DNA from: Caecitellus pseudoparvulus
Lineage: Eukaryota > Protista > Bigyra: Bicosoecida
Length of the DNA stretch: 35,509 nt
Direction: 5' to 3'
Assembly (NCBI GenBank): GCA_965644315.1
Contig: CBFFRQ010000134.1
Location: 1 to 35,509, forward strand
Shown here piece by piece: positions 1 to 28,234 of this stretch. The notes under the pieces were generated by a model, which was given only the letters and a program-made list of their open reading frames with translations, was not told the DNA's origin and made no database searches. Numbering within the stretch: the stretch's first letter is position 1; the number at the start of each line of letters is the position of its first letter. A program made the translations under genes and the position numbers.

Positions 1-308
1 TAACCATAACCCTAACCCTAACCCTAACCCTAACCCTAACCCTAACCCTAACCCTAACCCTAACCCTAACCCTAACCCTAACCCTAACCCTAACCCTAAC
101 CCTAACCCTAACCCTAACCCTAACCCTAACCCTAACCCTAACCCTAACCCTAACCCTAACCCTAACCCTAACCCTAACCCTAACCCTAACCCTAACCCTA
201 ACCCTAACCCTAACTCTAACCCTAACCCTAACCCTAACCCTAACCCTAACCCTAACCCTAACCCTAACCCTACCCTAACCCTAACCCTAACCCTAACCCT
301 AACCCTAA
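1..308 (+). repeat. Terminal telomeric repeat tract (CCCTAA)n (TTAGGG on - strand)
   Basis: About 50 tandem CCCTAA units from the first base with few variants (e.g. CTCTAA ~214, CCCTA ~268). A C-rich strand at the 5' end indicates a left chromosome end. Confidence 0.97.
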
Positions 309-483
309 ACTCTTCCAAATGTCAACCTACAATCATAGGTTGTGCAAAATTGCCTTTAAACAATGCCTGTCCAGGCGGCCGCACACCAAAGTGTGGTGTT
401 GCACAGCGCTAGTGCATTGCATTGGGTGCGCGGGTGAGCAGCAGTGCGATTTCCGCACGCGCACGCTCCCCACGCAGTGCTAA

Positions 484-3400
484 GTGCGGCTCCGGCTGGA
501 CGCTGCACCACTGCTTGCCCGAAACCATTGCTTCATCGTCATGCTCGTGGAAGGCCAGCCAGTCCTCGGCGTGCTCTTCGCGGACAAGTGCCTGGAGCAG
601 CGTGTGTCGGGGCGGCCACGAACAGGCGTGCTGACTGACATGTCCCACGCCGAGGGGCGGCCCGGACTTTCCAGCTCGGTGGCATGGACATTGACTGCAC
701 CGTGATGGCCAAGATGCATCATTTTTCGTCCGCAGGTGGCTTGGCATCTTCGGAGATGAGGCTGGAGGCCGAGTTTCCTGGAGCTGCTCCTGTGATGGTG
801 CGCGCTAATTCCGCGCTGAAACAATCCGCACCAGGGCAGACCATTCTCCCTTGTCACCAATGCTGCCGAGTGACGGTGAAGGCCCCGCCATTGCCAAGTC
901 CCTGCGCGTTGCTGCTGCTGTGCGAGAAGACTTCATCATCATGTTGAAGGGGCGGCTCTGTGGGCGTGGTGTACTCCAACACGCGGCAGTTCACGTCAGA
1001 GCGCGCCAGGGTCAGCGTGATCGCCCCCTCCCTCTGTAGTGAAGGTTGCTCAAAAGATCTCTGAGGCAGCAACCAGCATTGCCTGTGAGAGTGGGGATGT
1101 GTCCGAGATACTTGAAGCTTGTCCATGCCCTTATGTCGCCAACACTCACTCCATCGCCAAGCGTGCTCCAAAGCCTGTCGGACACTCCGTCTCCTCCAGA
1201 AGATGACGCCTCTGTCGACAAGCTGCCAAGCACACTGCCAAAGCCCCTTGCTGAGAGGCGGTCCCAAGAAAGAAAGAAGACACGGAGGGGCAGACGCAAG
1301 CCATCTGAGCAAAGAGGCTCTCCTCCTCGGCGCGCTTTGCTGAACTGTTCTGGTGAGGGCGTCGTGGCCCGGCCCGCTCGCCACAGCGCCCCCTCCCCTC
1401 CATCTGCACCCGCCGAGTCGTCAGGCCAAGCTGCTCCTTCCCCTGAACACCAGTCCCTCTTCCGTCCACCAGAGTCAAGCGCCCGACCTTCGGCAGATGG
1501 GACTCGCCCAGCCCACGCAAGAGACCTCCTCCCGTGTCCCCGACAGCTCGCGGCACTATCGGGCAGCGGGGCACAGCCACCTCTTGCAAGTCCTGCAAAC
1601 ACGGCACCCACTACGCTGCTAAAACTTGCTGACTGCAGTCGCCGACCAGCACGGCTTGGACAGGCAAACCTTGACTTGGGTTCCCCCTTGCAGCAACTCC
1701 TCGCCTCTGCGCACGCGTTCCCGCGGCCGGGACCAGACGACACTGTGTCCAGGCCTGCTTTGGAGAGCAGCGGCAGGAGAGCCACTCTTCGGTGACGATG
1801 ACCTTTGTCCTTCTTCAACACGCAGCCACCATCCAAGCGGCGCAGACATCCTTCTGTGCTGTGTTGAAGAAGAGCAGCGCGCGTCACCCTGGCACACCAG
1901 ACTCGGAGTCCCACGCTGTCTGTGAAGCAGAACCTTCCATGCCGACCACTGAGCAAGACAAAGCTTGACCTCTTTCAATCGTTCCCGTACCGACATGCGC
2001 CTGATGATGCAGCACTCACCAGCAGCCTCGTCCACCTGTGCTCCTCCCTGGTCTTCATCTCTTGCTCACGCGTATCAACGAGGGCCATCGGGAACTTGAA
2101 GGCGGCACAGTGTCTGGACACTGCCTGGTTGATGTCAAGGCAGAGAAGAGATGACCTCGAGGCAAAAGTCTTTTGCTGGGGTGTACTTCGCGTTTGCTCT
2201 CCAGCTTGGTTGACACTGGAGGGTGTCTCCCCACCTTCAGCTCATTGTCGTCAACGCTGAGAAGTCCACACTTGTACTGTGGAACCCTGACGAACCCTTC
2301 AAGAGCACCATCGTTTCCAATCGACGGCTGCCTGAGCACACTCGACTCGATGGGCATTGAGTCTATGCGCCGTGTCTCATCCTCCCCGCTGAGTGGCAAG
2401 CCGATTCCCTTCAAAGACAGAGTGCGGCTGGCCATGCTGTCCCTCAGGTCTGACTTTCCCCCACACTCCGGCGTTCGTAGCTGAGGACGAGACTGTCTGC
2501 CCAAAGACTCTCATCACTGGCAAGACAACACTGAAGTGTACCTCCCTCGCAGTGCCGCACCACGCGCCAACAAGCAGCTGCCGATGAGAGAGCCAAGACG
2601 GTTGACCCCATACTGTCACTCATCCCAACATCTGCTTGCAAGTCGCCGAACCAGATCGGTAGCGATGCACAGCCACACCCTGGCCGGCTTCTGCGGAAGA
2701 CACGCGGCACTCGCACCCTGCTGCTTGGAATGTGTGCACACGGCTCCCTGCGGCCAGTGTGTCCACGATGTCGTCACCCCTGTGTCCAGTCTGTGTGCAG
2801 TGCGTCGTCCATGTTGGCACTCTGTGTCACAGAGCCTGGGGGGCACGGCCTGCCGACACGGAAGTCATGGGCCTTTGAATGCTTCCGCCCAAGCCCGCCT
2901 GATCGGCCTGTCGGGCGGAGTGAGGTTGCCTTGCTGCTTGATCGAAGACTCAATGGCCCAGTGATCCCGGGCCTCGACGTTGATGGTCGCTGCATAATTG
3001 CTTGCTCGATCCCTGCAAGCCCACGGCCCATCGCCATCATAGCCACGTACGTACCCAACTGGCACTCTTGGCGAGCGAAAGAAGCCAGTCGCTGATCCGG
3101 ACACGAAGCTTCCGCACTTCGGCAAGAGGTTTGGCGGCAGCTTGAGTCTGCTGTTCAGGCAGCCTCCGGCTCCGCCTCACCCACATGATTGTCATCATGG
3201 GTGACTCAGAACACCTCATCCAGGTTGACGAAGGGGTAGGCACGTGGGGAGCAGATCACTGGGAGAACCGGACCGGCATTCCCGAGCCCACTGAAGACAT
3301 CCTGCAGATGCAGCTCCTCTGCGAGCAAGGCCCACTGATCCCAGCCGGACTTGGTGGCCTGCCAACGCACAGGTATGGTCAGTGCTCTGGACCCGCATCC

Positions 3401-6400
3401 TGATGACTGAGGACCTCCCACAGTATGTTGGAGCAGACCACTGCACATCACAACAACGTTCTCCAGCGGGACGAAAGTAGGCCGCTCGACTGAGTCCTCA
3501 GTGACCATCATCTTGTTGCAGCAGAAGTCCGAGTGAAGCCTGCCAAGCGAGGTGTGGACATCATCCAAGAGCCCCCATGTACAGGCGGTGCCACCCCGGT
3601 GGACCTCAGCGACAGAGGCGGGGCTGGCAGCGCAAGCGATGTTTCGAGGATCCCCTCAGCTCGCGGGCCACCGCGCTCCAGACAGGCAGCGCCGCCACCG
3701 AGCCTATCCTTTCTCAACGGTGCTGTCGAAGCTGCGGCTATGGACACACATCGCAAGGCCAAGACCCCACGTGACCCTCTGCCCCAGCTGAAGATGGACA
3801 TCAAGGCGGCCGGCGGGCTCAAGAAGTCCATGACTGCACGCGTGTCCAAGCTGCGGGAAGACCATTGCCAAGCTGCACCGGAAGCTCGCACTTGCCACCG
3901 GTCGGCATCCTCCAGCCAGACCACGCCCGTGCCATCCGAGAGGGAATCTCCATGGCCACTGAAGAGCTACACGCCACGCTTCAATGCCGCAAGGATGCAA
4001 TGCGGAAGCGCACGAGGCTTGTGACAGAAGAAGCGACCATGTCACTCTGTCCAGGATCCGAGCGCGGCTTGAGGAACTCGCTGTCACGGATCCCTTCACT
4101 GCCCACCAACACATCAAGCGCCCGTCAGGTCGAGGTCGTCGAGCCCGTCCGAGCTCCCATCAGGTCCGTGAAGTCCATGCAGGAGAGTGCTCATCTCCTC
4201 CCCTGATCTGGTGAAGGAGGAGGTTGCCAAGCAGATGTCTGGCATCCTGAGTCACAACAAGCCCAGGCCAACATCGCTGAGAAGTACGGGCTGGCAAGGT
4301 TCCTTCCCTCAGCCCAAGAGTCCTTCACACCTCAGCCGGTGACATGGCTTCCCTCCAAGAAGCAAGTCAAAGTCCTCATGGGATCACTCAGCTTGCATCG
4401 ACACCCAGGCTCTGGCAAAGTTCCAATCAGAGCACATCAAGTATGCTGGGCCAGGCTTCCAAGACATCTACTCCCAAGCCGTCATCCAAGCGTTGCAACA
4501 CGGCACCTGCCCGCCAGACTACCATGCAGGCGGTGGGTCACTCATCCCCAAGAAGACGAGGTGAAGCTGGGCGGCCTCGCACATACCGCTTGATTGTATG
4601 CCGCCCCCCTCACTGCGAAGCTCTTCTTCTCAGTGGCCGCTGCATGCCTGGAGTCCTGGATGCAAACATGGGTGTCGAAGGAGCAGGCTGAGCTGCACTC
4701 GACACCGCAACACGCATGAGCACATCTTGGCTCTCCAAGAGGTGATCAAGGGCCACCTGCGACAGTCAACAGCGCCAGTGCAAGTCCTGGTACTCTTCGT
4801 GGACTTCCGGGGAGCATTCGACTCTGGTGAGCCACGCAGCCATCACAGAGATCCTGAGGCTGCCTCCCTCCCTGCGCCACTCCCTGGCCGTCATCAAGGA
4901 GTACATGTCCAAGGCGACGGTCTCCATCAACACGCGCCATGGTCTTTGTCGCCCCCTTCCTGTCAGCAATGGTGTCCCCCAAGGAGGAGCTCTGTCCCCC
5001 TCCTCTTCAAGGCTGCGATGGATGTGCTGCCGCAAAGGCCCACGAGATGCCCCTCCAGGCATCCAGGGAGTGGGCATCCCAACACCAGCAGGCCATGTCA
5101 CCCACACCCTGTATGCAGACGACCTGGCCTGCATCGGCACCGCCTGCCACGGCCTTGCACCGAATCTTCGTAGAGGTGAAGGCCATCGCTGCCCGGGTTG
5201 GCCTTGCCATCAACCCGTCGAAGTCCAGGGGTCATGATCCTTGCCAACCTTCCGTGCGAGGCAGCCGGACACCAGTCAGTGAAAGGAAGAAGTTGGTGTG
5301 TGCGCTCGGCTGCCCTCAAAGCGGGCAGCATGCTGAGAGGTTGGCACCAAGTCCATCCAACGGGTGGCCGAGTACACTCCACTTGGGCGTGCCGATGTCC
5401 GAACATCCTGCCAAGACCCGTGCACTTACCCTGCAACAAGCTGGGCTTGCTTGCATCCAAGCCGGAGTTCACTGCGGGCGCGCTGCTCAGTGCCACCTGG
5501 CTCGATGTGCAGCAGCGGCACCTGGTTGGGTATGCCACCGTCACGTCAGCCGCCGACTACATGCTGTCCACCCCAAGCCAGCAGTTCCCTGTGCTCCGCT
5601 GCTGCGACGTTGACCGCTGGCGTCGCCCTCGCCTTGGACAGGACCCAAGTCGGCTCGCAGAGTGCACTCATGCGCCCCCACAGCTACGCCAAGCTGGCTC
5701 TATGCGGAGTCCTGCCTGCCCACGTCCGCTCCACGCAACTGCGGACTGGGATGTTTGTCAAGGCTCTCCGGATGCTGCACTCGGACACCCCTCTTGCCCG
5801 AGCTTCTGTGCCTGACCATCCCGCGGGCCCTTGACCTTATGCCTGCTTCGATGTCGACGACCTTCATCGTCGACACCATTGCTGATGGAGGTCGACTCCG
5901 GGCTGCCAGTGTCCCTGCTCCGTGGGCACTGCATGCCCTCTTGGACTCTGGCTCGTGGGCTGCATGCCGGACCTTGCACAGCTTCGGCTTGCACGTGCTC
6001 CTGGCTCTGAGCATGCTGCCACAGCCCCTGCCCAAGTCCTTGCCGGACTTAAGACCACCCCGGGCCTCCGCAGGTCTGCGGTGTGCTGGGTTGGCTGCCA
6101 GCGAGACGTCGTCCATGGCCGAACCCCCGGCCTTCACGGCAGACACCCCCTGGGCCCTGCGTCGCCAAGTCCTCGCGTCGTATCTTCATGTAGCCCAGGC
6201 AGTGCCGAGTGCAGCTGCCCACTACACCACCGACAGCCGAATCCCCCAAGTGCAGAAGCCCAGGCCGTATCATCTTGGGCCTGGTGCGTGCAGCACTTCG
6301 ATGTGGCTACATCCACTGCCACACGGGGTGAGACCCCCTCTTCTGGGTCTGTCCTGATGACAGGCCCACCAGAGCGATGGTCCATCACTTCCAGACCTTA

Positions 6401-7314
6401 CAGCTTCTTCATGGGGGGGACAGTGCCACTCTGTACGAGTGCTGTCCGAGTTGCGGACTCAACACCGATGTGCAGCTGCACGTGCACATCCTGCTGCACT
6501 GCACCCACCACGAACTCACCATGGCACGCCATACACACGATGACCAAGTTCAGAGAACTGGCCAACAGGTCAGCTGTGCCCGAGTCCGCGGCGGGCCAAG
6601 TGCAGTGCCTGCCCATCCCCCCCCAAGATCTGCCACGCCCTCCTTCGTGCCCCCGACTCAGAAGCCGCGAAGCCTGCCGGGACCTCGAGGTCCTCCACGG
6701 GCTCCTGCTCTGCGGGCAGTGGCCTCACCGGTGGGGGCTGGCCGACGAAGAGCAGCTTGTCTCTATGAAAGAGGCGGCTGTCCTCTCCACACCCCACCTC
6801 GTCCCCTTCTCACCGTGCTGGTCCTTGCCGTGTCCGCGCCCCAGCTGTATGGCAAGACATCCTGCGCAGCGCGGTTGAGTTCACAGCAAAGGCGTGGCGG
6901 GTCACAGTCACTTACATGTTGCGTATGACCGATGCCCACCACCTTGCTGTCCAGAGGCATGCTGAGTACCTGTGGTGGGCGGTACATGGGCGCGGGGCGC
7001 CGCTGCCTGGCCGCACGCAGCCAGTGCGGTCAGCGGCCACGCGGCACACGCGCAGGCCCCGCACTCGCCGCAGGGCACGCACCTTTTTCCCTGCCAAGGC
7101 TGGCCAAGTGCCGTCCACGGAGGGCAAGGTCCAGAGGACGCTGCAGCACTTCATGGGGCCTCAGCCAGCCCATGCAGACACTGATGGTGAGGGGGAAGGG
7201 CCCGATGGTTCCTGTGAAGAGAGCGAGGAGCGCAAGGCGGAACGCAGAGCGTGCGGGCGGGGGAGTGGAACAGCCACGCTTGGCGGCCGCGTCTACCCTC
7301 CACGAGTGTCCTGA
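484..7314 (+). pseudogene. Disrupted APE-RT polyprotein of copy A (many frameshifts; 5' boundary approximate)
   Basis: Homology to the B protein switches frame every few hundred bp (ORF-track fragments 2730, 3984, 4344, 4598, 4827, 5364, 5662, 6377, 6916). The last homologous frame stops at 7314. Some breaks may be sequencing indels. Confidence 0.8.
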
Positions 7315-7883
7315 CGTGATGAACTCCAGTGTGAGCGTGGTGATAACCACGGTAGCCCGAAGACAGATGCCCAAGACCTTACCTTTTACTTACTACATAG
7401 CCTGCGAGTAGCAGTGGAGTGAGCGGGAGCGTGCCTCGGGCCGCGGCGCGCGTGCAGCCGCAGTGCTGCACGGCCACGGCCCGGACGGCTGCTGACGACG
7501 AAGCAAGCTCACTCACCACGAAACCAGGGCGTGACGGGTTGAAGAAGAAGGTCCTTTTCCTTTCTGTATCCCCCTTGATGCGCGCGATGCGCTCTGTGGC
7601 GCGGGCGCGTGTGTGTGCACGGGTGCTGGTGTGCGCATCGAATTCCGCACCACGCACCCGGCCGAGTTCCCGCGCAGAGGCGGAGCACACACCTCGCGAA
7701 GGGCGCAGAGAGGCCTATGAGGGCCACAGAGGAGGTGGGTGAGGAATTTGGATTATGATCTGGCGTCAAGACTGCGCGGATGCCTAGGCGTGCTCTGGTG
7801 TGCCCCGGGTGTCTGGCGCTGGCGGACATGGGATGAAGTGCAGCGGAGGAGGCGGAAGCGATGAGTGGAGCGGGCAGGGACCT

Positions 7884-8066
7884 GCCCTAGCAAGTGGCGG
7901 CAGATATAACGGGTGCAAGCCTGTGTTTGTTGCCCGAATCCGCGCCAAGCGGTAGCCGCTGTGGCGTCCTACATGTGCAGAGGTGCATTGTGGGGCGCCC
8001 GTGTGATCAGCTCAAGCTGTACGGCTGCCAAGTTGCTGTGCCGAGGGTGAAATGCATTGTGAGTTG
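7884..8066 (+). other. Conserved structured 3'-terminal RNA element of copy A
   Basis: Shares blocks GCCCTAGCAAG, AGCCGCTGTGG, CAAGCTGTAC and AATGCATT with the B 3' end at matching spacing. Stems are predictable by eye, e.g. hairpin 7963-7999 and 8008-8014 pairing with 8060-8066. Confidence 0.65.
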
Positions 8067-8722
8067 CTAACCCTAACCCTAACCCTAACCCTAACCCTAA
8101 CCCTAACCCTAACCCTAACCCTAACCCTAACCCTAACCCTAACCCTAACCCTAACCCTAACCCTAACCCTAACCCTAACCCTAACCCTAACCCTAACCCT
8201 AACCCTAACCCTAACCCTAACCCTAACCCTAACCCTAACCCTAACCCTAACCCTAACCCTAACCCTAACCCTAACCCTAACCCTAACCCTAACCCTAACC
8301 CTAACCCTAACCCTAACCCTAACCCTAACCCTAACCCTAACCCTAACCCTAACCCTAACCCTAACCCTAACCCTAACCCTAACCCTAACCCTAACCCTAA
8401 CCCTAACCCTAACCCTAACCCTAACCCTAACCCTAACCCTAACCCTAACCCTAACCCTAACCCTAACCCTAACCCTAACCCTAACCCTAACCCTAACCCT
8501 AACCCTAACCCTAACCCTAACCCTAACCCTAACCCTAACCCTAACCCTAACCCTAACCCTAACCCTAACCCTAACCCTAACCCTAACCCTAACCCTAACC
8601 CTAACCCTAACCCTAACCCTAACCCTAACCCTAACCCTAACCCTAACCCTAACCCTAACCCTAACCCTAACCCTAACCTAACCCTAACCCTAACCCTAAC
8701 CCTAACCCTAACCCTAACCTAA
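8067..8722 (+). repeat. Internal telomeric tract (CCCTAA)n between copies A and B
   Basis: About 656 bp of near-perfect CCCTAA starting in CTAACC register, with two CCTAA variants near the proximal end (~8677, ~8718). Confidence 0.98.
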
Positions 8723-8736
8723 AGAAGGCACGGAGC

Positions 8737-11700: not shown

Positions 11701-14700
11701 CGACTCAGCTCCCTGAAGAAACGCATGACAGCCAAGACGAGGTCCATACAGAAGCGACTTGTGAAACTCCGTCGGCGCAAGCATCTGCTGCGGCACTCCT
11801 CACTGCCTAGCTCGATCGAGGCTCTGCGCAAGGAGGAAGAGCGGGAACACATGCTGCTTGAAGACCTGCATGCGACGAGGACTGAAAGGAGGCAAGCGAT
11901 GCGCAGGTGCACCAGACTCGTGGCAAAGAAGCACCAAGCCGCGAAGTTCCAGGTACAGCACCGCATCAGGGAGCTTACACTGACCGACCCATTCACTGCG
12001 CATCAACACATCCGGAAGTTGGCTGGGAAGAAGCGGAAAGGCACAGTGTCCTGCATCCAGTCAGTGCTCGACAGCAACGGGACACTCATCACGGAACCTG
12101 CTCTCGTTCGGTCCACGGTGCGGGACCACATGTCCCAAATCATCAGCTCCCCCCCTCTAAAGCTTGCCCCACTGAAGTTCGGTTTGGCCCGGCTACTGCC
12201 GCCTGCACAAGATGCTACCGCCTCTCATGATGCTTGGGTCCCAAGTGTGGACCTCATCATGAGAAAGATTCAGTCACTCAACCTACACCGCAACCCTGGC
12301 ACTGGAAGCTTCCAAGCTGAACATCTGAAGTACGCCAGTGAAATCTTCAGGAAGAAGTATGCTGGTACCCTCCGCCAAGCCATCAGCACTGGCTCCTGCC
12401 CTGAGGAGTACCACTGTGGCGTCGGGACTCTCATCCCAAAGGCTGCTAGCCAACCCGGACGAGTACAGACATACCGCCTCATTGTTTGTCGCCCACCTCA
12501 AGCCAAGCTGTTCTTCTCTGTGGTAGCAGCTTGTGTGGAAGACTGGGTCCAAAGATGGATCTCTCCAGAACAAGCTGGCTTCACTCATGCTCGAAACACG
12601 CATGAACAGATACTGGCACTACAAGAAACTTCTGCTGCGTATCTCCGAACAAAGCCGGACGCCAGTGTCCTCATACTCTTTGTTGACTTCAGAAGCGCCT
12701 TCGATACTGTCAGTCACGGTGCGATCATTGAGATCCTTGAGAGCGCAAATCTCCCGAGCGCCCTACTCGAATGTGTGAAAGACTACATGCGGCGAGCTTC
12801 TGTTGCCATCCACACGGGGCATGGCCTCTGCAACCCCCTGCCGGTGACAAACGGTGTCCCACAGGGTGGAGCCCTGTCACCTCTTCTGTTTAAGATTGCC
12901 ATAGACGTTCTCTCTCACCGGCTCAGAGAACTACCAAAGCAGGGGGTGGCGGGTGCAGGAGTGCCCACACCCCGAGGCCGAGTCACCCACACGCTGTATG
13001 CGGATGATCTGGCCTGCCTGGCTACCACACCAGCTGCCCTCCATCGAATGTTTCTCGAAGTCAAATCTGTGGGCAGTCGTGTTGGACTGACCATAAACCC
13101 CAACAAGTCAGGTGTCATGATCTTGACTGGAGCGCAACATGTCAGAGGCACATCAGCGACAGAGAGACGAAAGCTGGTCTGGAGATCCCGCTGGCTCAAG
13201 TCTGGGGAGATGTTGAAAGTAAAGGGGGCGCCCATCCAACGTACGAGTGTCTACTCGTACCTTGGTGCTCCACTTTCAGAAAACTTCAGCCGCACCAGGC
13301 TGCTTGCCTTGAAGCATGCAACACAATCTTGCACCCGCGCTGGCTTCGCCTGCGGTGCCCTCCTTAGTGGCGTCTGGCTTAGTCCAAGTCTCAAACAGCG
13401 GGTCGGTGCTGCAGCTGTCAACAGCGCCGCCGACTACATCCTTGCCTCTCAGGTCAGCAACTCCGTGCTACCTCTTCGAGATCTTGACCGTGGACTGGCT
13501 ATTGCCTTCTCTAAGGCCCAGCTTGGCATGCAGAGTTCACTAGCTCGGATGCACAATTATGCAAAGTTGGCTGTGTGTGGCATCCTGCCAGCACACATCC
13601 GAGCGACAAGGTTACGCAGCAACATCTTCAAAAAGTTGCTGAAGAACTTGCACAACCCCACGCCTATAGTCAAAGCCCTGTCATCCAGCCTTCATCAAGC
13701 CCTGCGCCAGCTTCCGCCCACCATGGACATGGCCTTTGTCTTTCAGGCCAATGTCCGCCTGGATAGGAAAGGACCGGGAGGAATTCCAGACCCATGGGCC
13801 CTGCACGGTCTCCTTGACCTTTGGCTACATGGTTGCCTCCCTAATCGCCGGGCACTTGAGGCATCCTGTCAAGAGCCAGCCGCGGACTCATCATCCGAAG
13901 CACAGGGGATCGACATCCTTGCTCGGTTGGATCCCCCTCCTCCCAAGGTCCAACTTCTCGGACTTGCTGCCCCGGAGCTGTCAGACCTCTCCCAACCCCC
14001 AACCTTCCCAGACAAGACCTCTTGGTCGATCAGACAACATGTAGTCGCCTCGTTCCTCCATGTTGCACAAGCGGTTCAATGCCAAGAAGTTGGCTACACC
14101 ACCACTGGCGAGATGAAGCGCTCAAGGCGGCCTAAGGAGTTCCACGTTGGGCTGGGGGCCTGCTTCTTTACATGGCTCCACCCCATCCCCTCTTCTGTGA
14201 ACCCACTCTTTTGGGTCCACGAAGATGACCAACAGAGTCGAGTCAAGATCCACCTCTGGCAAACGCTGCAGGTCTTCAATGGGGGAGACACCCCTACACT
14301 CTTCAGCGAATGTCCCCTGTGTCATGGAGTTTCATGGTGTACACTCCATGAACATGTCCTCTTTGACTGCCCCCACTACAAACTGCAACCATCGCGGACG
14401 GACGTGATGGTTGCAGTGCGAAACTTCCTTGAGCGGTCAAATGATGCGGTGAGGGGAGTGGCCAACGCCCAACACCTTGAAGTGCCCCCCCTCATCCTGG
14501 ATGCTGTTGTCCGGGCTGCTGAAGGCCGCTCTGTGGGCCGACCGGGTCGCTTGATCCTTCTTCGCCTGCTACTGTGCGGTCAGTGGCCCCATCGGTGGGG
14601 CCAGCCATCAGCACAGCAGCCTTGGAGTCCTGAGGCGGCCGCAGTCCTGAGCAACCCTCATGTTGCTCTCCGCGGCCCCTCAGGTCTTCTCCGTCCTCCC

Positions 14701-15111
14701 AAGTACTGGAAACAAGCTCTGGCTGCCGCCACGAGCTTCTCTGTATCTGCGTGGGACGTGCTGGTAACATGCATGCTGGGACGTACCTCACAGGCTGATC
14801 GCCATGTCCAGGTACACGCCAGGTACCTGTGGTGGGCTGCACACGGCCGCACGAGTCCACTCCCGGGCTTCTCCACCCCTGACCCAAGCGCTGTGAGAAA
14901 GCATACACGACATGTTCGCACGCGGCGCTTTGAGCGGACTTACTTTCCTGTCAGGGCTGAACGCAGGCCCCCTCGCTCCTTCACGAGGCAGGCCACTCTC
15001 CTGGACTTTGGTCTCACACGGCCCGAAGCCCGTGATGACCCTCCATCGCCCTCTTCCAACTCGGCCATGTCCTCCGAGATGTCCTTGGAAAGTCCATCGT
15101 CTTCTGAATAG
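8737..15111 (+). CDS. Non-LTR retrotransposon polyprotein: putative cysteine-protease-like domain, APE endonuclease, reverse transcriptase, CCHC zinc finger
   Basis: 2124-aa ORF. APE motifs SWNV, LCLTE, AYVP, GDLN, LDHILV, SDH. RT motifs YRLI, EQAGF, VDFRSAFDTV, GVPQGGALSPLLF, YADD (12997-13008), NPNKS, YSYLG. CPLC-x10-H-x4-C at 14311-14370. The ATG is probably internal to the original protein, because copy A has upstream homology. Confidence 0.95.
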   Translation: MREAAAREDDFTVRLGRGGFLAVVFPNTRQFVAAKGKVQAKAPTLVLNAAREIMPLATSLAVNTGDVSSIVTLVKSHLRQASPAAHQDRQHVRQSVPKKGDAAVDKAPIRHNIKTSAQTQQAPGKRKKVRRGQRSKASTASTHSKVVPGRTFADLFKTPPSETTAREKHQHVVPSSPPARMPKLQTEAVVLPSSRVRTGQQTRWDKPSTLDQDSKMQAPVSEDSVPASQTTTSTATTLILTPPASTPESISESDTSLSLSVPDAAPQHIVKVVRMKDCPRVPGSLPTHDIPASSPLARLLASASVYGNRDQRHCVQACLETAAGEKIFETEDLVALQHAATVEAGQRAYRNLRRRAAANTSDSSSSDVQCTMPAGGVMSDCAEDQLEALARLLFRFTPKDSLLQAQAPPVLLPGLHMLLNRMNSGHRALLGGSKLHGGICPQAVMYEDGQDKYFEGVHFAFALHRLQHTDTAHLTLVLVDHDRGVLVVWNPDIPDASVEVSFHNCMERLHADAVEMVYRVSSTPMVGSPSPLKERLRNVMQSLKQDFPPLPFAAEDGELHLKTYIAGQFTRVALPTGRLTRQQASALADAKEHDPLLKLIPQDTDAMPPRWEQGPCTPVGKSGTTSISMVSWNVASSCGNHLHEVIVCAKSASSRSSRMVLCLTEPGGHGTLDTEIMGLQCFRPSPPDRPPGRSEVALLIDRRLRAQRMGDLGLDGRCVVACTIPTTPKPLAIIAAYVPNWHTAQRKKPLADPDTKLPHRQQIWEQLTNAVQHLRTTHMITLMGDLNCHPGQHGVTSWDTSCWRNQSGIPDPTDDVQELATVCEQAQLQPAGVGGQPTQATFQRVLDHILVCPSLRSRLVKPLAVVTTYSSARKKNHRKMILSDHHMLTAGVAVKLPPRPKASRQHSSTHSVPPWWASSTREGLKAQYMHRRHLDASLGPADLHVPGPGDEAEALQSLDALITTSARTTHAQCKSTSPQMIQAFADIPRLSSLKKRMTAKTRSIQKRLVKLRRRKHLLRHSSLPSSIEALRKEEEREHMLLEDLHATRTERRQAMRRCTRLVAKKHQAAKFQVQHRIRELTLTDPFTAHQHIRKLAGKKRKGTVSCIQSVLDSNGTLITEPALVRSTVRDHMSQIISSPPLKLAPLKFGLARLLPPAQDATASHDAWVPSVDLIMRKIQSLNLHRNPGTGSFQAEHLKYASEIFRKKYAGTLRQAISTGSCPEEYHCGVGTLIPKAASQPGRVQTYRLIVCRPPQAKLFFSVVAACVEDWVQRWISPEQAGFTHARNTHEQILALQETSAAYLRTKPDASVLILFVDFRSAFDTVSHGAIIEILESANLPSALLECVKDYMRRASVAIHTGHGLCNPLPVTNGVPQGGALSPLLFKIAIDVLSHRLRELPKQGVAGAGVPTPRGRVTHTLYADDLACLATTPAALHRMFLEVKSVGSRVGLTINPNKSGVMILTGAQHVRGTSATERRKLVWRSRWLKSGEMLKVKGAPIQRTSVYSYLGAPLSENFSRTRLLALKHATQSCTRAGFACGALLSGVWLSPSLKQRVGAAAVNSAADYILASQVSNSVLPLRDLDRGLAIAFSKAQLGMQSSLARMHNYAKLAVCGILPAHIRATRLRSNIFKKLLKNLHNPTPIVKALSSSLHQALRQLPPTMDMAFVFQANVRLDRKGPGGIPDPWALHGLLDLWLHGCLPNRRALEASCQEPAADSSSEAQGIDILARLDPPPPKVQLLGLAAPELSDLSQPPTFPDKTSWSIRQHVVASFLHVAQAVQCQEVGYTTTGEMKRSRRPKEFHVGLGACFFTWLHPIPSSVNPLFWVHEDDQQSRVKIHLWQTLQVFNGGDTPTLFSECPLCHGVSWCTLHEHVLFDCPHYKLQPSRTDVMVAVRNFLERSNDAVRGVANAQHLEVPPLILDAVVRAAEGRSVGRPGRLILLRLLLCGQWPHRWGQPSAQQPWSPEAAAVLSNPHVALRGPSGLLRPPKYWKQALAAATSFSVSAWDVLVTCMLGRTSQADRHVQVHARYLWWAAHGRTSPLPGFSTPDPSAVRKHTRHVRTRRFERTYFPVRAERRPPRSFTRQATLLDFGLTRPEARDDPPSPSSNSAMSSEMSLESPSSSE
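10615..11420 (+). other. Apurinic/apyrimidinic-like (APE/EEP) endonuclease domain of copy B
   Basis: Ordered motifs WNV (10630), TE, Y-V-P, GDLN (11086-11097), LDHIL and SDH (11383-11391). Confidence 0.9.
12286..13266 (+). other. Reverse transcriptase domain of copy B
   Basis: Canonical non-LTR RT motifs in order, including YADD. Confidence 0.95.
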
Positions 15112-15767
15112 GCGGGGATCTGTGCGAGGCAAAGCGCAGAAACAGGCAAGCTTACATGTGTATCGTGGTGAGAACCACGGTCGTGGTTGGCTGTGAAGGC
15201 GAGGCTGCTACATGCGCTGTCCTTGATGCTTTGTTTTCTCTGTGAAAAGCAAGGATATTGGAAAGTGAATGTTGTCAGTACACGTACCTGTGTCTTCGGG
15301 GTCCACAGATAGATCCACTGGCGGCTCTGCGATGGTGCGGGCGGAATTTGGGACCGTGAACAGACGGGCACAGCGTGCAACGCCGCGCGCGGAACTTACA
15401 GGTTCGCCAGGTCCTGAATGATGAGATGGTTGAGTCATCCATGAACAGACGAAGGCCCTTGATGTGTTCTGGGTGGATGGGGGGCGTTGTTCCGGCGGTG
15501 CGCGCTGCTACCACCGGCGTGGTGTAGTGCAGCACCGCCGTGAAACGCCACCCCCAAGGCGGCCACTGCGGCTCAGTTCAGCGCACAGTGGCCCCAGGCA
15601 CGCGTGTAGTGCCTGGCAGAGGCCAAGAGATCTGGGGGACTGATGAATTATGATGCGAAGTGTGGACTGGGACGAAGTAGGAGTGGGCCCGGCCCCCTCT
15701 GGCTCAGCCGACTGAGCCGAGAGGGCGCGGGAGGGACAGTTCAGCATGTATGGGCGGGCGCGGGCGC

Positions 15768-15953
15768 GCCCTAGCAAGCGGCGGCTCATACAACGGACGT
15801 ATGTCCGTGATGGCTGCAGACCCACGAGAGTGGGAGCCGCTGTGGTGCCTACTACAGTGCATTCGTGTGCTGTGGTACGCAAGGCACCACGAGTGATGCC
15901 CAAGCTGTACCGTGCAAGAGTGTGCGGAGGCAAGTTGCAATGCATTAAGTGAG
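15768..15953 (+). other. Conserved structured 3'-terminal RNA element of copy B
   Basis: GCGGCTC/GAGCCGC stem enclosing ACGGAC-gtat-GTCCGT and CCCAC-gaga-GTGGG hairpins. GTGGTGCCT/AGGCACCAC stem enclosing a TTCG-loop hairpin. AATGCATT at 15939-15946. Confidence 0.68.
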
Positions 15954-16011
15954 CTAACCCTAACCCTAACCCTAACCCCTAACCTAACCCTAACCCTAAC
16001 CCTAACCCTAA
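15954..16011 (+). repeat. Short internal telomeric tract between copies B and C
   Basis: 58 bp of CTAACC units with one CCCCTAA and one CCTAA variant. Confidence 0.95.
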
Positions 16012-19000
16012 AGGAGCACCCTTTCACGGCGCATCAACTCATCTGCCGTGCGCTGGGCCGAAGAGCCGGAGGCCTGGCGCCAACTGGCCTCGCGCTGCAG
16101 GCCGGCCAGGCGGTGACCGAGCCGGCTCAGGTGGTGAAAATCTTGCATTCTCAGATGAGATCTGTGATAGCACAGCCACCCAGTACCGACCTGGACGGAC
16201 TCAGTGCAGCCCACTTTGAGGGTCTGCTGCCTCCCATTTCCGCAGGGAGTGACTCGGGAGCCTCTGGAGAGCCGAAAATCTTCAACTTTGAGGCGGTCCT
16301 CAGAGCGACCAAGTCACTGCGGAAACACCGCAGCAGTGGTCTGTCGGAACTTAAGGCCGAACACTGGGCCTACGCAGGCCCGGATGTTCTGAGATGCCTC
16401 GCAGAGACGCTACAGCACCTTGTGAAGGGAGAGGGTCTCCTGCCACGGGAGCTGCACCACGGCAAGGGAGTACTGCTCGCAAAGAAGGGTCAGACCCCCG
16501 GGGTCGCGTCGACCTACCGGCTGATCGTGTGCCGGAGCCCGCTTAGCAAGCTGGTGAACAGTGTTCTTGCATTCAGGCTGGAACAAGCCGTCCAAGGCCT
16601 CATCACTCCGCAGCAAGCAGGGTTCTCCAGAGGCCGCGGGTGCCACGAGCACGTTTTTGCGATGCTCGAAGGACCAAGAACAGCACTGAGAACAGCGACC
16701 GCGACGTGTTCCCGGGACATTGGACCCAAGAACAGCCCTCCACTGGCCGTTTTCGCCGTGTTCATTGACTTTCGGAAGGCTTTCGACTCCGTTGATCACA
16801 GGGCGTTGCGCGTGCTGTTAGACCACCTGCCGCTGGACCGCACCACCAGGCGACTCCTCGTGGATTTCATCGAGAACGCCAGCGTCTGCATCGACACGGA
16901 ACACGGCATGACCGAGGCTATCCATGCGACCAGTGGCGTAGCGCAAGGGAGCGTCCTGTCGCCCCTCCTATTCAAGATCGCGGTCGACCTGGTGTCCCGT
17001 GCTCTCTCCTTGAACCACATTCCGGGGGAGGGAGAGGGGGGAAAACCGACACTGGGGGTCAAGCTACTGCATTCAAGGGGGGACCCAGTCCACACTGGAC
17101 CCCGATTCAGCCACGCGCTGTACGCAGACGACCTGGGACTCGTCGTGGACAGCGCGGACGCTGTGGTGCGCGCGATCACCATCGTCAGGCGGGTCGGGGC
17201 GCTGCTGGGGCTCCAAGTCAACGCATCCAAGTCCGCCATCATGATCATGCGGCCGACGCCACGACTTGCATACCGCATGAGTCGACTCCATGTGCAAATA
17301 GTCAGAGCCAAGAAACGCCTTGCTGCGGAGTCACAGGCGCTAACCGTCGACGGAAAGCGGATCCCTCTCACGGACGAGTACGAGTACTTAGGAACACCGC
17401 TGCAAGCCAAGCTGTTCATACAGCATAAAACAGCTCGTCGACATGCCGCAACCACCTTGAGCATGGCTGGGCATTCTTCTGTGGCGATTTCTGCGGCCGA
17501 ATGGCTCGCCCCGTCGGCAGCGCACCGCCTTTTGAGGACCTCAGTGGTCGCTGCAGCGGACTACACACTGGCAATCACCGGCAAACACTCGCTCATGCCC
17601 AACCGCATGTGCGACAATGCCGTTGGCAGTGTTCTGGACAAATCCGTGTTCGGTTTTCAGCTTCATCCGATGCGCGTCCAACATGGCGCGGTCCTTGCAG
17701 CGGCTGGTATCCCTCTGACACACATGCGCACGATGCGAAGTCGCATTGGTTTCATAGTCCGGACACTCAAGCAGGCTGTGGTGGATTCGCCTGCTTTCAA
17801 GATCCTGATGGTGAGCGTGTGGCAGGGCCGAACGATGGTCGCAGACGTCCCAGACGAGATGGTCCCGTCGGCGCTCCTTTTGGAAGACGTAGCGGCATCG
17901 AAACACACCTTCTATGGCACGGGCACCCCGTGGGCCGTCAGACCTCTCCTTGAGTTGCGCCTGTTGGGGTACCACGAGGGTGTGTTCGGCGTTCTGGCCA
18001 TGGCCGCGAGGTGGCACGATTTGGGCGGAAATCGGGACACCACAGCCCTACACGAAGAGATGCGATCTCTCCAAAAGGCCTTAAAGCTGCCCAAGAACAC
18101 GGCCCAGAACGGCCCGAAGTTGTTCGTCGCAACGAGTGTTCCTGTGGCCTCTGCGAGGTTCGACAGGTCGGTTGACTTCCCAGCCACCTTCACGTTGAGG
18201 CAGCGTTTGGACCTCCTGGAGTCGTACATGTTCATCGCAAGAACGCAAAGAACAGACATGTACCGGGAGACCATGTTCCTACCTGCTGAGTACCCGGGCC
18301 ACTCGCCTCGGGGAGAAATAGGCGACAAAAGAGTGAATCCGACGCTCTCGCCGAGGCCTCACCATTTGGACATCCGAGCGCGAACACACGCGGAACTGCA
18401 TCCGATTCCAAGTGCTCCCTGTAGTGCTTGGACTGCCTGTCACCCTGACAGAAGCCCGTTGCCGAAGGTGTTCATGCTGCAGACACAGCAGCTCCTGCAT
18501 CCGGGTGCTGCTCTGACACCGTATATCGCATGTCCTCTCTGTCTGGACCCCGAAATACGCGATGCGGAGTTCATTTTAGACCACATTCTGTTGGACTGCC
18601 CTTCGGTATCTCTAGAACGTCTGGCGTTCTTCCGAGAGGCAGCGCAGAACATGTGGGACTGTGACGAAGCGGCAAAGTCAACCGCTGTGCCGAGGCGGCC
18701 GACGGCCGAGGCCCTTCGGCACCCACCCCTGAGATACGTCACCATTCCAGAAAGCCTACACACAGCGGTGCAGGCTGGCTGTCAACTGGACGCTGGAACA
18801 CGTATCTCATGCCAGAACACCCGGGCGTTGCTAAAGCGGCTCGCCTTGTGTGGTCAGTGGCCCACGGGAGCACCAGAGTGTGCGGACTGGGATCACGCAA
18901 CTTGTGCTGCCCTCACGGCGCCACACATGGAACGGTTGCGTGTTCCAGTCCGAAACTCGACCCATCTACTGGACCAAGACCCAGTGAAAGCTGCTGAAGC

Positions 19001-19331
19001 ACTGGAGGCATTTGCTGGGCCCGTGCGGCAAAAGTTGCTCCCGAATTCTGGGGGTGCCGCAGACGGCAAAAGTTTCTACTGGCCCCACGAGGTGGTCGCC
19101 GCACCTCCCGGATGGATGAAAGTCCTGAAAACGTGCATCCGGTACTGTGGGGCCGTGTTCAATCACGTGGTAGAAGCTCAACTTCAGGGCGCAGGCGTGG
19201 AACGCGGGCAGCCTGCCGCGGACCTCGCGCGGCGAGCCCGCTACACGGCCGCCACGCCTGCCGCCTGGACCATGCCGCGCCACCTCACTCCCGGGCGAGG
19301 TGGCGCAGCAGAGGAGGAAGAAAGTGAGTGA
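16011..19331 (+). CDS. 5'-truncated reverse transcriptase ORF of copy C (RT + CCHC finger)
   Basis: About 1100 uninterrupted codons. Motifs YRLIVCR, QQAGF, IDFRKAFDSV, GVAQGSVLSPLLF, YADD (17121-17132), NASKS, YEYLG, CPLC...HILLDC (18531-18599). The ORF-track start at 15912 lies in B's 3' UTR and reads through the telomeric spacer. Confidence 0.88.
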   Translation, partial: KEHPFTAHQLICRALGRRAGGLAPTGLALQAGQAVTEPAQVVKILHSQMRSVIAQPPSTDLDGLSAAHFEGLLPPISAGSDSGASGEPKIFNFEAVLRATKSLRKHRSSGLSELKAEHWAYAGPDVLRCLAETLQHLVKGEGLLPRELHHGKGVLLAKKGQTPGVASTYRLIVCRSPLSKLVNSVLAFRLEQAVQGLITPQQAGFSRGRGCHEHVFAMLEGPRTALRTATATCSRDIGPKNSPPLAVFAVFIDFRKAFDSVDHRALRVLLDHLPLDRTTRRLLVDFIENASVCIDTEHGMTEAIHATSGVAQGSVLSPLLFKIAVDLVSRALSLNHIPGEGEGGKPTLGVKLLHSRGDPVHTGPRFSHALYADDLGLVVDSADAVVRAITIVRRVGALLGLQVNASKSAIMIMRPTPRLAYRMSRLHVQIVRAKKRLAAESQALTVDGKRIPLTDEYEYLGTPLQAKLFIQHKTARRHAATTLSMAGHSSVAISAAEWLAPSAAHRLLRTSVVAAADYTLAITGKHSLMPNRMCDNAVGSVLDKSVFGFQLHPMRVQHGAVLAAAGIPLTHMRTMRSRIGFIVRTLKQAVVDSPAFKILMVSVWQGRTMVADVPDEMVPSALLLEDVAASKHTFYGTGTPWAVRPLLELRLLGYHEGVFGVLAMAARWHDLGGNRDTTALHEEMRSLQKALKLPKNTAQNGPKLFVATSVPVASARFDRSVDFPATFTLRQRLDLLESYMFIARTQRTDMYRETMFLPAEYPGHSPRGEIGDKRVNPTLSPRPHHLDIRARTHAELHPIPSAPCSAWTACHPDRSPLPKVFMLQTQQLLHPGAALTPYIACPLCLDPEIRDAEFILDHILLDCPSVSLERLAFFREAAQNMWDCDEAAKSTAVPRRPTAEALRHPPLRYVTIPESLHTAVQAGCQLDAGTRISCQNTRALLKRLALCGQWPTGAPECADWDHATCAALTAPHMERLRVPVRNSTHLLDQDPVKAAEALEAFAGPVRQKLLPNSGGAADGKSFYWPHEVVAAPPGWMKVLKTCIRYCGAVFNHVVEAQLQGAGVERGQPAADLARRARYTAATPAAWTMPRHLTPGRGGAAEEEESE

Positions 19332-19698
19332 TAAAAGCTTGCTTTGGGTTGATAGTGCATTCTAAGATGTTATTCTGAAATTCCCAGTGTCGTAACGCGC
19401 AGCGGGGCCGTTTTGGGCTGCGGGGTGGCGAGGTGTGCGCGGGGTCGCCGCGGCGCCCCCAACACGCCAAGGCCGAAACCCGCGCCCAACTCACCCAACA
19501 GGCGCCGAAAGCCTGAACAACGACGACTAACATTAAACTACCATGTTCTGAAAAGAACATGCTCATCTCACACGGTGACTCACCATGTTTCGTGCAAGAT
19601 ATGTGCGCGACGCAAGCGAGAACTGTGGCCCGCTTCTTTCGAGGAGCAAGTGTGAGGTGAGTGTGGTGAAAACAAGAGGCTATAATGCATTGAACTTC
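16012..19698 (+). mobile_element. Telomere-associated non-LTR retrotransposon, copy C (5'-truncated, lacks APE; more divergent family)
   Basis: Starts at HPFTAHQLI (equivalent to DPFTAHQHI in B, between APE and RT). RT, CCHC and LCGQWP motifs are present. The 3' end is inferred from AATGCATT-7nt-CTAACCC at 19684-19705. Confidence 0.85.
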
Positions 19699-19796
19699 CT
19701 AACCCCACGCAGCCGGACCATCGTGCAGTTTCCCCAGGCAGGGCACCAGCGCCCGAGACCAAGTGCACGACACGTCCCTGCCGCCCACCTGCGGCG

Positions 19797-27500: not shown

Positions 27501-28234
27501 ACGCCGCGGACGTGAACCACAAGGTCAAATGCTCCCGAGTTCTCAGTCGACTCCAAGTACGCGCTGGGGAGTCGTGGCAGCCCATCAACTGCGGCAGGCC
27601 CAAGCTGCAAGGAAAGGGAGTCGATCAAGCGTGGAAACGTGGACGTAAAGGTTCGAGTCACACTCCACCAGTCAGTCGAGTGCAGACAAGGACCCCAAGC
27701 CGCATGCCTCGCATCGATGCAAGACACGCTCAAAACAGCAAGTGTCGCAGCAGATCCGATGTCTGCTGCGTCAGACAGCGACAGGGGAGCGCCGACACTG
27801 GTCCCTGTCTGGGCACCAACAAACAGCACCGCTGGGTCGTGCAGTGCTGCCACACTGGTGCCCCCATCCAAGGCCACTTCCTGCTGCACAGTCGAGGACA
27901 GCCACTCAGGCGGCCTTGAAGACGGAGTCGCGCTGCGAGTTGCTGTCACTGATGGTGTCACCGAGGGAGAGGTGCTGGGTGTGGATGCTGCTGGTGCTGA
28001 GGGCGTGGCGACGCACGCTGTGGCATCGTGGGATGGGCGTGGAAGACTGCTGCAAGCATGCTGAAGGATACGGCATGCTACGCATGCACCCTTGAACAGC
28101 GCCTGTGGGAGGCGCGCCACCCTGCGCTGAGCGGCGCCACTGCCGTCAGTGGCAGTGGCAGAACGCTCCCAGGCGCACGAAGCGGCAGCAACACCAGCAC
28201 CTCCCACAAAGCACTCCCTCGTCCATGCCGTCAA
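24530..28234 (-). CDS. Large cell-surface or membrane protein: Ser/Thr/Pro linkers, beta-rich (Ig/BACON-like) domains, CxxC (ephrin-receptor-like) repeats, multiple TM helices
   Basis: 1234-aa ORF with TPSxTPS linkers, CERCSPGT/CTQCPGGTF/CLQCP, C..GHRGILCGEC..GW and following hydrophobic helices. The N-terminus is uncertain (TTG start; a signal-peptide-like stretch upstream is cut off by a stop or frameshift). Confidence 0.75.
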   Translation of the reverse strand: MTAWTRECFVGGAGVAAASCAWERSATATDGSGAAQRRVARLPQALFKGACVACRILQHACSSLPRPSHDATACVATPSAPAASTPSTSPSVTPSVTATRSATPSSRPPEWLSSTVQQEVALDGGTSVAALHDPAVLFVGAQTGTSVGAPLSLSDAADIGSAATLAVLSVSCIDARHAAWGPCLHSTDWWSVTRTFTSTFPRLIDSLSLQLGPAAVDGLPRLPSAYLESTENSGAFDLVVHVRGVVGLNATAVVPVKVVDLAQSSAPPPSIAPSRSPLVRLSSSKTPAPTASSSASAQPTKSPGASPSSTASVTPQPLPFLTAFPVEVSAAFELNGQSDTKAQAVIVSSAEHVHWDAQVSFRGQQHGWLTLSAARKARSLTNQGQQGVILTMRSANLPPGLHRATVTFQANSTASNEAAGGATGRLRMANLLPVIVQVSLRVIAPISDIRPRVMERNVIPGGNSTQQLLLRNAGSGTLTWTLDHADASLAPWLAVCTPAGVCGHAGGTGSDIASVLASELGVVSVGSLREDSEVLQGSLGVGERVLLTVWLVSPGAAVSGLFSSTLRLRTNEYDVKSQARQLDQVLPVTMRSTLFSVVPGTVSLTVAPSKEAPGIAILQTLASFADLRVQVVSSQDTSSTAAWLQTITAKDEILLPASTGQLVVPVSVVHGGELCLGPRPPLGLLCGSGELAATILVRITAFLAEGASGATDVAALAAYEEIRAIPLRVQVRGGGAFSHTSRFMLPGAVSWPKRADREVITIQPALSGQRNMSMMDASAPGSAMIVSGRQQVGLLLEARDATSREVQSLVQLPQVHQLMTGKADLTVGLAALDEGRAVLQVQPSQPQTTLLTSSISGQAMYPYLSRGAVAVPAVVVSPTCRTDSEVLADSQMDCICAKGWQRRQSTNDTFGLRCERCSPGTIRANVESQEAACTQCPGGTFANLAQTKCLQCPLNGVSCAAGQFRPRPGFWCDTCVTDASMVPSHPKLQERYWSKLKDVASAELKGDTTGADSPARRRLQALVNETAELQAAVAGKAVLYAGANILQCTPPDACKPVANSSGISCVPGHRGILCGECAEGWARSSPQLLCVKCPDDSFGFLQSIGSWVLFTGLLVYLALRTSDRESKEGQSRGLLIGVFRVMTGWAQMYAELLSTRLPPESALDGIMAWLSSVSVGVSTNSVPAQCALRTDMYTRFFITLSIPIAAVSIPLIVAGVTSILQRQSHAVLQAAAER

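Follow-up and report, generated by a model that had tools for sequence, protein, structure and literature searches.

How do retrotransposons come to lie head to tail among telomerase-type repeats at the end of a chromosome? This question is raised by a contig of the marine protist Caecitellus pseudoparvulus (NCBI GenBank assembly GCA_965644315.1, contig CBFFRQ010000134.1), whose 35,509 nucleotides, read on the forward strand, are referred to here as the window. A preliminary description of this stretch, made from its letters, had proposed that positions 1-19705 form a head-to-tail array of telomere-specific retrotransposons that have no long terminal repeats (LTRs) and are interleaved with TTAGGG tracts. 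Our analysis bears this out: the tracts and three elements on one strand were verified with Tandem Repeats Finder (TRF) and Pfam, and we are highly confident that the first 19.7 kb of the window represent an array of telomere-specific long interspersed nuclear elements (LINEs). This part of the window is a real chromosome end.

Architecture of the Chromosome End

Read from the terminus inward (window 1-19706), the array consists of a telomere of 51 units, element A, 109 units, element B, about ten units, element C and eight telomere-like nucleotides, after which the host genes begin. The telomeric tracts were located with TRF, and all parts of the array are given on the + strand, which is the C-rich one. 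The terminal tract, (TAACCC)x51.5 according to TRF and the sequence, occupies positions 1-308 and is followed by element A (309-8066), a full-length member of the family with the 3' tail GTGAGTTG, whose frame is broken many times. The internal tract at 8067-8719, (CTAACC)x109, measures 653 bp, is 99% perfect, begins in the CTAACC phase and finishes with ...CTAACC. Element B (8720-15953; family with the 3' tail AAGTGAG) possesses an intact single open reading frame (ORF) of 2124 aa (8737-15111) and a 3' untranslated region (UTR) at 15112-15953. A short spacer of (CTAACC)x9.7 (15954-16011) separates it from element C (16012-19698; family with the 3' tail GAACTTC), which is truncated at its 5' end and in which the frame that encodes the reverse transcriptase (RT) and the C-terminal part is intact to position 19331, with the RVT_1 domain at about 16482-17396. 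The letters CTAACCCC at 19699-19706 are the sole telomere-like letters separating C from unique host DNA. The inner limit of the array is marked by the first host ORF, an AAA-type ATPase on the - strand (19797-22481) at single-copy depth; read depth was 38x for the host genes vs. 258-1760x for C.

All three elements have their 5' ends toward the terminus. No nucleotide similarity was found between A and C or between B and C, and A and B share short stretches only (66-69%); A, B, and C hence represent three families and not three copies of one. Their proteins are about 30% identical to one another, and their 3' ends are built alike: ATGCATT, then seven to eight family-specific letters, then CTAACC. 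There is no poly(A) or other A-run at the 3' end of A, B, or C, no LTR-like direct repeats flank any of the three, and a Pfam search of the element proteins gave no match to RNase H.

State of the Three Elements

Element A is colinear with aa 17-2118 of B at about 30% identity, spread over many frames, and contains no long ORF. Its identity to copies at five other contig ends is 93.6-95.3%, with about 95 one-base gap openings and about 100 mismatches per 5 kb; these five siblings are 97.3-99.96% alike mutually, and two of them keep open frames of 1364 and 1442 aa. Since the siblings are nearly identical and two retain open frames, the frameshifts of A are probably consensus errors, and its broken frame would reflect a poor consensus at the contig tip rather than decay. 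The 5' terminus of A, (CTAAC)TTTCCAAATG, recurs at six or more other junctions, which identifies A as full length; an abundant RT-less family described below has the same terminus. Like other members, A carries a 5' UTR of about 550 nt. This 5' UTR is missing from B, which starts 17 nt ahead of its ATG at the terminus (C)TAAAGAAGG, recurrent behind different neighbors; further B copies, in which the RT segment is identical and the 3' UTR 100% identical, are present on contig C44. Element C is a 3.7-kb remnant that starts at the equivalent of B aa 1085, is 29% identical to B over 977 aa and contains, among the domains sought, RVT_1 only. In full C-type copies the open frame runs to about 2800-3400 aa. 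The preliminary description had ascribed to the elements a single ORF with an apurinic/apyrimidinic endonuclease (APE), an RT and a CCHC motif. This layout was recovered in B; A has no long ORF, presumably as a result of the consensus errors, and C is a 5'-truncated remnant.

Several further features of the elements were noted. Between families with proteins only about 40% alike, the first 370 nt or so of the 5' UTR are conserved to 70-74% (window 309-870; locus L018, reverse strand 3077-3440); this stretch may serve as a promoter or as a second RNA element. In C-type full-length elements and in a metagenome relative, single giant proteins of about 3400-3700 aa are encoded (L011 = C147:55000-62892; L020:7579-18753), and no Pfam match was found in the 1800-2100 aa or so that precede their endonuclease. 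The C-strand repeat is itself open in two frames (NPNP.., TLTL..), so that ORFs called mechanically pass from the telomere tracts into those of the elements without a stop (L001, L005, L012, L016 reverse strand); the repeat contains no ATG.

Distribution of the Elements in the Genome

We searched the 30.6-Mb assembly, which consists of 215 contigs (the window is contig C134). HSP90 from this genome shows 73-75% identity to proteins of oomycetes and diatoms and 99% to a metagenome protein, which makes a stramenopile source probable. A 267-aa piece of the B RT gave 103 matches, which correspond to about 70 copies on about 55 contigs. Every match on the + strand lies at most 21 kb from a contig start and every match on the - strand but one at most 16.3 kb from a contig end, with 5' ends outward. 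The 5'-outward polarity and the telomere specificity proposed for the window therefore hold genome-wide. The one exception, an RT fragment at C23:10663-11160 (-), lies 10.7 kb from the contig start and is the sole one oriented opposite to the nearest end. TTAGGG tracts terminate 12 of 18 sampled right-hand contig regions.

The 3' motif ATGCATT-N5-10-CTAACC was found 175 times in the genome (137 forward, 38 reverse) vs. zero times for the reversed control, which is more than chance; the few internal ends are taken up below. The tails define at least ten subfamilies, many of which keep frames of 1900-2400 aa, and open frames persist in more than eight of them. Identity between copies at different ends reaches 99.96%, a sign that the elements were active recently.

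Within or at the end of some telomeric arrays we observed AT-rich stretches unlike the genome, which has 60% GC: in L012 (C13:975000-983774; an example lies near reverse-complement coordinate 5122 of this locus), in L014 (end of C88) and in L017 (C208:38000-47999).

Junctions With the Telomeric Repeats

Three or more perfect units follow at only 50 of the 175 3' ends. Of the 175 junctions, 161 were listed, read to 12 nt past the first repeat unit and tallied by eye, so that the following spacer counts are approximate. About 64 of the 161 listed junctions run into long tracts, and in about 97 there are 6-17 telomeric nt, after which another element or DNA of a different kind begins. A spacer of exactly one unit is the most frequent (about 22 cases), followed by 7 nt (about nine) and 8 nt (about eight). 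Among the listed A-type ends CTAACC follows in 17 of 19, with CCTAACC in one and CCCTAACC in another. When the C-type tail was searched without requiring a repeat, all 18 copies continued with CTA.., and most entered unrelated non-telomeric sequence after three to eight letters. Full-length 5' ends are preceded by whole CTAACC units, and two families themselves begin with CTAA(C). In addition, micro-copies consisting of 9-13 nt of a 3' tail are embedded in tracts.

Translated to the G strand, this fixed phase means that the cDNA always begins after ...GGTTAG-3' and that a completed copy often ends in TTAG-3' again. The unit that a human-type telomerase adds per cycle is GGTTAG, and its template is CUAACCCUAAC; the match of the junction phase to this unit and template is suggestive, not evidence.

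A Folded RNA Module at the 3' Ends

The last 200 nt of twelve subfamilies were aligned, and this alignment revealed an RNA module of about 190 nt, located in A at 7873-8066 (+), where it ends with ATGCATT and the tail, and in B at 15757-15953 (+). It contains 41 predicted pairs, 18 of them with compensatory (double) changes, and 98.4% of the cells of the alignment pair. The covariation of 0.429 compares with 0.247 in shuffled alignments, none of 500 of which reached the observed value, and with 0.03-0.11 when the partners were slid. Given the compensatory changes, the 3' module is under selection. The C 3' end aligns poorly with it and has little more than AATGCATTGA in common. Rfam gave no match in window 1-20000.

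Endonuclease, Reverse Transcriptase, and N-Terminal Module

In element B, all domains of which lie on the + strand, the APE-type endonuclease is encoded at 10609-11406 (Pfam Exo_endo_phos, PF03372, aa 660-885) and is recognized from Pfam, alignments and a structural model. The catalytic residues E, Y, D-N-H, D, and SDH are kept in B and are invariant in eight sequences, down to 32% identity. The model of the B endonuclease (predicted local distance difference test, pLDDT, 79.7; predicted template-modeling score, pTM, 0.84) has the human L1 endonuclease as its best fold match (Foldseek E 2e-12, TM 0.66-0.70), with ExoIII and APE1 next; the TRAS1 and R1 (R1Bm) endonucleases were not among the top 50 fold matches. 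The RT follows at 12433-13236 (RVT_1, aa 1233-1470) with its YADD box at aa 1421, and the active-site residues of the RT are conserved, like those of the endonuclease. RVT_1 was matched with E-values of 8e-30 in B and 8e-25 in C, and the RT of human L1 ORF2p was matched at 2e-18. After the RT of B, Pfam and inspection of the sequence detected only a C-terminal Cys/His motif, CX2C..H..C (14311-14379, aa 1859-1881), and no restriction-like endonuclease. The RT with a YxDD box, the N-terminal APE domain, the lack of LTRs and the variable 5' truncation with constant 3' ends together make these elements LINEs of the APE type.

Ahead of the endonuclease lies an N-terminal module, the first 620-640 aa of B, which every B-like and A-like family shares, with identities of 37-64%. 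It is also encoded alone: the most abundant family in the genome, which is absent from the window (tail GAGTAG, about 2.9 kb), lacks an RT and encodes only a homologue of B aa 1-623 (39.5% identity), plus the 3' module. The sole database relative of its protein is a 694-aa metagenome protein. The preliminary description had recognized no gag ORF, RNase H, or poly(A). The latter two were indeed not found, but a gag-like part does exist, fused into the single ORF and encoded separately by the RT-less family.

Pfam recognized nothing in the first 640 aa of B, in the RT-less ORF, in the 2119-aa N-terminal part of relative P0006 or in the N-terminus of relative P0005, and there was no Pfam match to a zinc knuckle in the N-terminal part of B. 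An AlphaFold model of the B module reached a pLDDT of 70-91 over aa 270-590, and all of its 50 best VIA structural matches were papain-fold cysteine peptidases, Josephin-type deubiquitinases first (Z 8.2, 7.5, 7.4); Foldseek agreed weakly on the papain fold (E 0.003 or weaker). Seven families, the RT-less one included, show no variation at C314, which begins a helix, at H473, which begins a strand, or at N490/D492. On the strength of the model, the fold searches and these residues, a papain-like (Josephin-like) fold is likely, and we place the predicted cysteine peptidase domain at 9580-10341 (aa ~282-535).

Searches of the Protein Data Bank (PDB) by sequence returned noise only, both with the 639 N-terminal aa of B and with its endonuclease alone. 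A profile of eight endonucleases gave weak matches to ExoIII and the L1 endonuclease; Shiga-toxin rows at E ~0.3 were discarded as chance.

Relationships of the Reverse Transcriptase

A HMMER search of 1.84 billion proteins returned only eight matches below 1e-30, the five strongest of them metagenomic and the other three animal proteins. One of the five metagenome relatives is a protein of 3724 aa on an 18.8-kb contig that begins with CCCTAA repeats and then GGCAAGGA, a 5' terminus that is also recurrent in the C. pseudoparvulus genome. Relative P0005, from a coral metagenome contig, has no telomere repeats at either contig end. A word-based protein search with the APE-RT region gave three weak matches, and a protein atlas generic endonuclease-RT clusters only.

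In a maximum-likelihood tree of 106 RT cores, which covers the 98 nearest RT relatives and contains no labelled references for the LINE clades (the cluster names read 'hypothetical'), seven families of this genome and the 3724-aa metagenome relative form one clade (SH-aLRT 99.7, stem 0.47). The nearest rows outside this clade are metagenomic, plant (Acorus), and charophyte (Closterium) LINEs, with weak support (60-82). Among 41 near RT relatives, RNase H was found in none and the plant-L1 zinc domain in three. Together with the C-terminal Cys/His motif, these features of the relatives loosely point to kinship with the L1 group, as a placement made from sequence and without labelled LINE-clade references. 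The separate ORF1 and the poly(A) of the L1 group are lacking: there is one ORF, and the three 3' ends have no A-run. The suggestion that the elements form an undescribed family agrees with their forming a clade of their own among the 98 nearest RT relatives from 1.8 billion proteins, a comparison made without the Repbase reference set.

Telomerase Candidate and Strain Comparison

The genome contains an intact candidate gene for the telomerase reverse transcriptase (TERT) on contig C77 (24238-27642), where Telomerase_RBD (79 bits, above the cut-off) and RVT_1 are matched within a single frame that runs uninterrupted over at least 1135 aa and measures 1389 aa in full. The search for TERT that had been proposed at the outset thus yielded a candidate, and since the candidate exists, the term hybrid, given earlier to a system in which retrotransposons are combined with telomerase-type repeats, is apt. 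Tracts and elements alternate genome-wide.

The window was found in runs X1-X4, which derive from one organism, with relatives in aquaculture and marine metagenomes. All runs are stored as k-mer contigs, which cannot cross the tracts. From position 19653 onward, an 804-nt contig of X1 and a 4128-nt contig of X3 bridge the junction between C and the host DNA without differences. Metagenome X5 matches the host side, at about 97.5% identity from position 19706 on, but its distal side is different DNA, which places the breakpoint at 19705/19706. The last 30 letters of this distal DNA do not occur in the C. pseudoparvulus genome at three or fewer mismatches. X5 also holds a C-type copy truncated at 18140, with telomere repeats before the truncation point, a further sign of recent activity. 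The strain difference at the C/host junction, one case, fits a terminal loss that was healed by addition of C in the strain of the window.

How the Arrays May Be Built

We consider it reasonably probable that the array arose as telomere-specific APE-type LINEs were copied time and again onto the G-rich strand by target-primed reverse transcription, in alternation with the addition of repeats by telomerase. Reverse transcription primed on the G strand is indicated by the fixed phase and the polarity of the junctions. In such a process, the element RNA would end in one or more CUAACC units, which take the role of a poly(A) tail and base-pair with the G strand where its 3' end stops at ...GGTTAG-3'. 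Bound to the 3' module, the RT would then copy the RNA outward. The primer would most often be a natural or very short chromosome end, so that elements are added to ends or heal them as HeT-A does in the fly; an APE nick within the repeats would be an alternative source. In the several families that start with CTAA(C), the finished cDNA would end in TTAG-3' and be extendable by telomerase or by the next element. The N-terminal module may act as the gag-like part, with its papain-like domain processing the polyprotein. Given the short spacers, the joins to non-telomeric DNA, the micro-copies and the strain difference, we tentatively favor priming on G-strand ends (...GGTTAG-3') that lie at the terminus or close to it, rather than an insertion of elements into long tracts.

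Some observations weigh against this account. The 3' end of the RNA is deduced from DNA, and the endonuclease, being intact and conserved, speaks for a role of nicking; the same junction phase would result from a precise nick at TTAG^GG. Template jumping or a shrinking of internal tracts could also account for the short spacers. A few solitary 3' ends, C-type for the most part, lie inside contigs, one of them 155 kb into a contig of 1.35 Mb. For the strain polymorphism there is one case, taken from short-read contigs, and the order of A, tract, B, tract, and C comes from the assembly alone. The papain-like assignment relies on a model that reaches a pLDDT of 70-91 solely within this domain, and the scores of its fold matches are middling (Z 8.2; Foldseek E >=0.003).

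Alternatively, the elements could be pure parasites of telomeric repeats, as are TRAS and SART: the APE would nick TTAG^GG inside tracts, telomerase alone would keep the ends, and the short spacers would result from later contraction or nesting. The intact and conserved endonuclease, the fixed junction phase, the long downstream tracts at 50 junctions (the 109-unit tract of the window included) and the TERT candidate all accord with such a life style. We nevertheless hold it to be rather unlikely, since most junctions have a spacer of only 6-17 nt, most commonly of exactly one unit, C-type ends adjoin non-telomeric DNA, and the C/host junction appears to be a terminal truncation when compared to another strain. 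It is improbable that the main route by which the arrays spread was recombination between ends, through break-induced replication or exchange of subtelomeres, with the elements as old passengers. Near-identical copies do occur at different ends, and contigs such as C18 and C30 show the same spacing of copies, which could mark them as duplicated or allelic ends; yet junctions, truncation points and combinations of neighbors vary among ends, open frames have been kept in more than eight subfamilies, and the compensatory changes reveal selection on the 3' module. We give very little credence to an assembly artefact in which reads bearing telomere repeats were joined wrongly, be it at the link from A through the tract to B or in the order as a whole. 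The first 8 kb do look poorly polished, with many one-base gaps, and the available reads are k-mer contigs unable to cross repeat tracts. Against this stand the canonical junctions on both sides of the tract, which are seen at many other ends, the element-tract-element arrangement at 50 places and the C/host junction, which contigs of two samples bridge without differences.

A bolder reading, which we offer as doubtful, is that the LINEs could be a working partner of telomerase and not a mere parasite. Their RNA would end in CUAACC(CUAAC), which resembles the telomerase template and would pair with the G-overhang, their 5' ends encode TTAG-3', and the strain-specific C/host junction suggests that repeat-less ends can be healed. 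If true, each finished addition would recreate a primer for telomerase or the next element, and a protist that possesses telomerase would independently have evolved an end-building system like that of HeT-A and TART, complete with an RT-less partner and a papain-like protease of its own.

Host Genes Next to the Array

Beyond the boundary after C, the AAA-ATPase ORF is followed by cysteine-rich, receptor-like ORFs with leucine-rich repeat (LRR) and NCD3G matches in Pfam. Two large ones on the - strand, at 24530-28234 and 29464-33579, have weak matches to NCD3G and DUF7630, and one also contains LRR repeats. A 75-bp tandem repeat (32654-33120; 6.3 copies, 67% matches) lies within the LRR-containing ORF of 1371 aa at 29464-33579.

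Comparison With Known Telomeric Retrotransposons

To our knowledge, telomere-specialized retrotransposons are known from a handful of lineages: flies, the silkworm, Giardia, Chlorella, two fungi, and rotifers. The system described here is diverse, with at least eight families retaining open frames in the small genome of a marine protist, and relatives occur in coral, aquaculture, and ocean metagenomes. It offers a compact setting for asking how a LINE RT and telomerase share one substrate, and whether retrotransposition heals chromosome ends outside the Diptera.

The HeT-A, TART, and TAHRE elements of Drosophila resemble it in their head-to-tail arrays with 5' ends outward, in the co-existence of several families and in an abundant RT-less, gag-like partner (PMC5537684, PMC13534243), and signs of addition to repeat-less ends are a further likeness. 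The Caecitellus system differs in its telomerase repeats and TERT candidate, in junctions made of CTAACC and not oligo(A), and in autonomous members with one fused ORF that probably belong to another RT clade. Uniform head-to-tail terminal arrays and a gag-only partner without RT are found here as in Drosophila, whereas telomerase has apparently not been replaced.

Two ORFs and a poly(A) characterize TRAS and SART, whose orientations are opposite to each other. In contrast, the elements described here have one ORF, no poly(A), a single orientation and an endonuclease fold that best matches L1. The early remark that their layout does not correspond to that of TRAS and SART is upheld by the single ORF, the missing poly(A) and the R1-type endonucleases, which fall outside the top 50 fold matches. 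Like these R1-clade elements of Bombyx, they are APE-type LINEs that target telomeric repeats, and the host has repeats of the telomerase type; a further likeness is the 3' UTR, which has an important part in starting reverse transcription (PMC7265360, PMC2868851).

MoTeR of Magnaporthe and FoTeR of Fusarium likewise reside in TTAGGG telomeres of telomerase-bearing hosts, with the 5' end to the terminus, telomere-like 5' letters and a non-autonomous partner, MoTeR2 (PMC7367193, PMC12857005). Their restriction-like endonuclease follows the RT, as in their kin CRE and SLACS, whereas an N-terminal APE and an RT of another lineage are present here. With the endonuclease-less Penelope-like elements Athena and Coprina, our elements share restriction to the termini and telomere-complementary 3' letters able to pair with the G-overhang (PMC8557442); those possess a telomerase-like RT and no endonuclease, unlike the LINE RT and conserved APE found here. 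A protease ahead of the RT has a precedent in NeSL and Utopia-1_TSP, single-ORF, target-specific LINEs with a Ulp1-like cysteine protease in this position and a restriction-like endonuclease (PMC4640811). The protease predicted here has a papain/Josephin-like fold, and the endonuclease is of the APE type.

Zepp of Chlorella is an L1-group LINE that has gathered at the telomere, has poly(A) and nests into itself. By description, it is similar to our elements as a protist or algal LINE with L1-like traits at the chromosome ends of a telomerase-bearing host; we know of no report of a telomere-repeat tail, an RT-less partner or a 3' module for it. The combination of an APE endonuclease, a telomere-repeat tail in place of poly(A), a folded and covarying 3' module, a partner family without RT, a protease that is likely papain-like and a candidate telomerase gene in the same genome is, to the best of our knowledge, seen together here for the first time.

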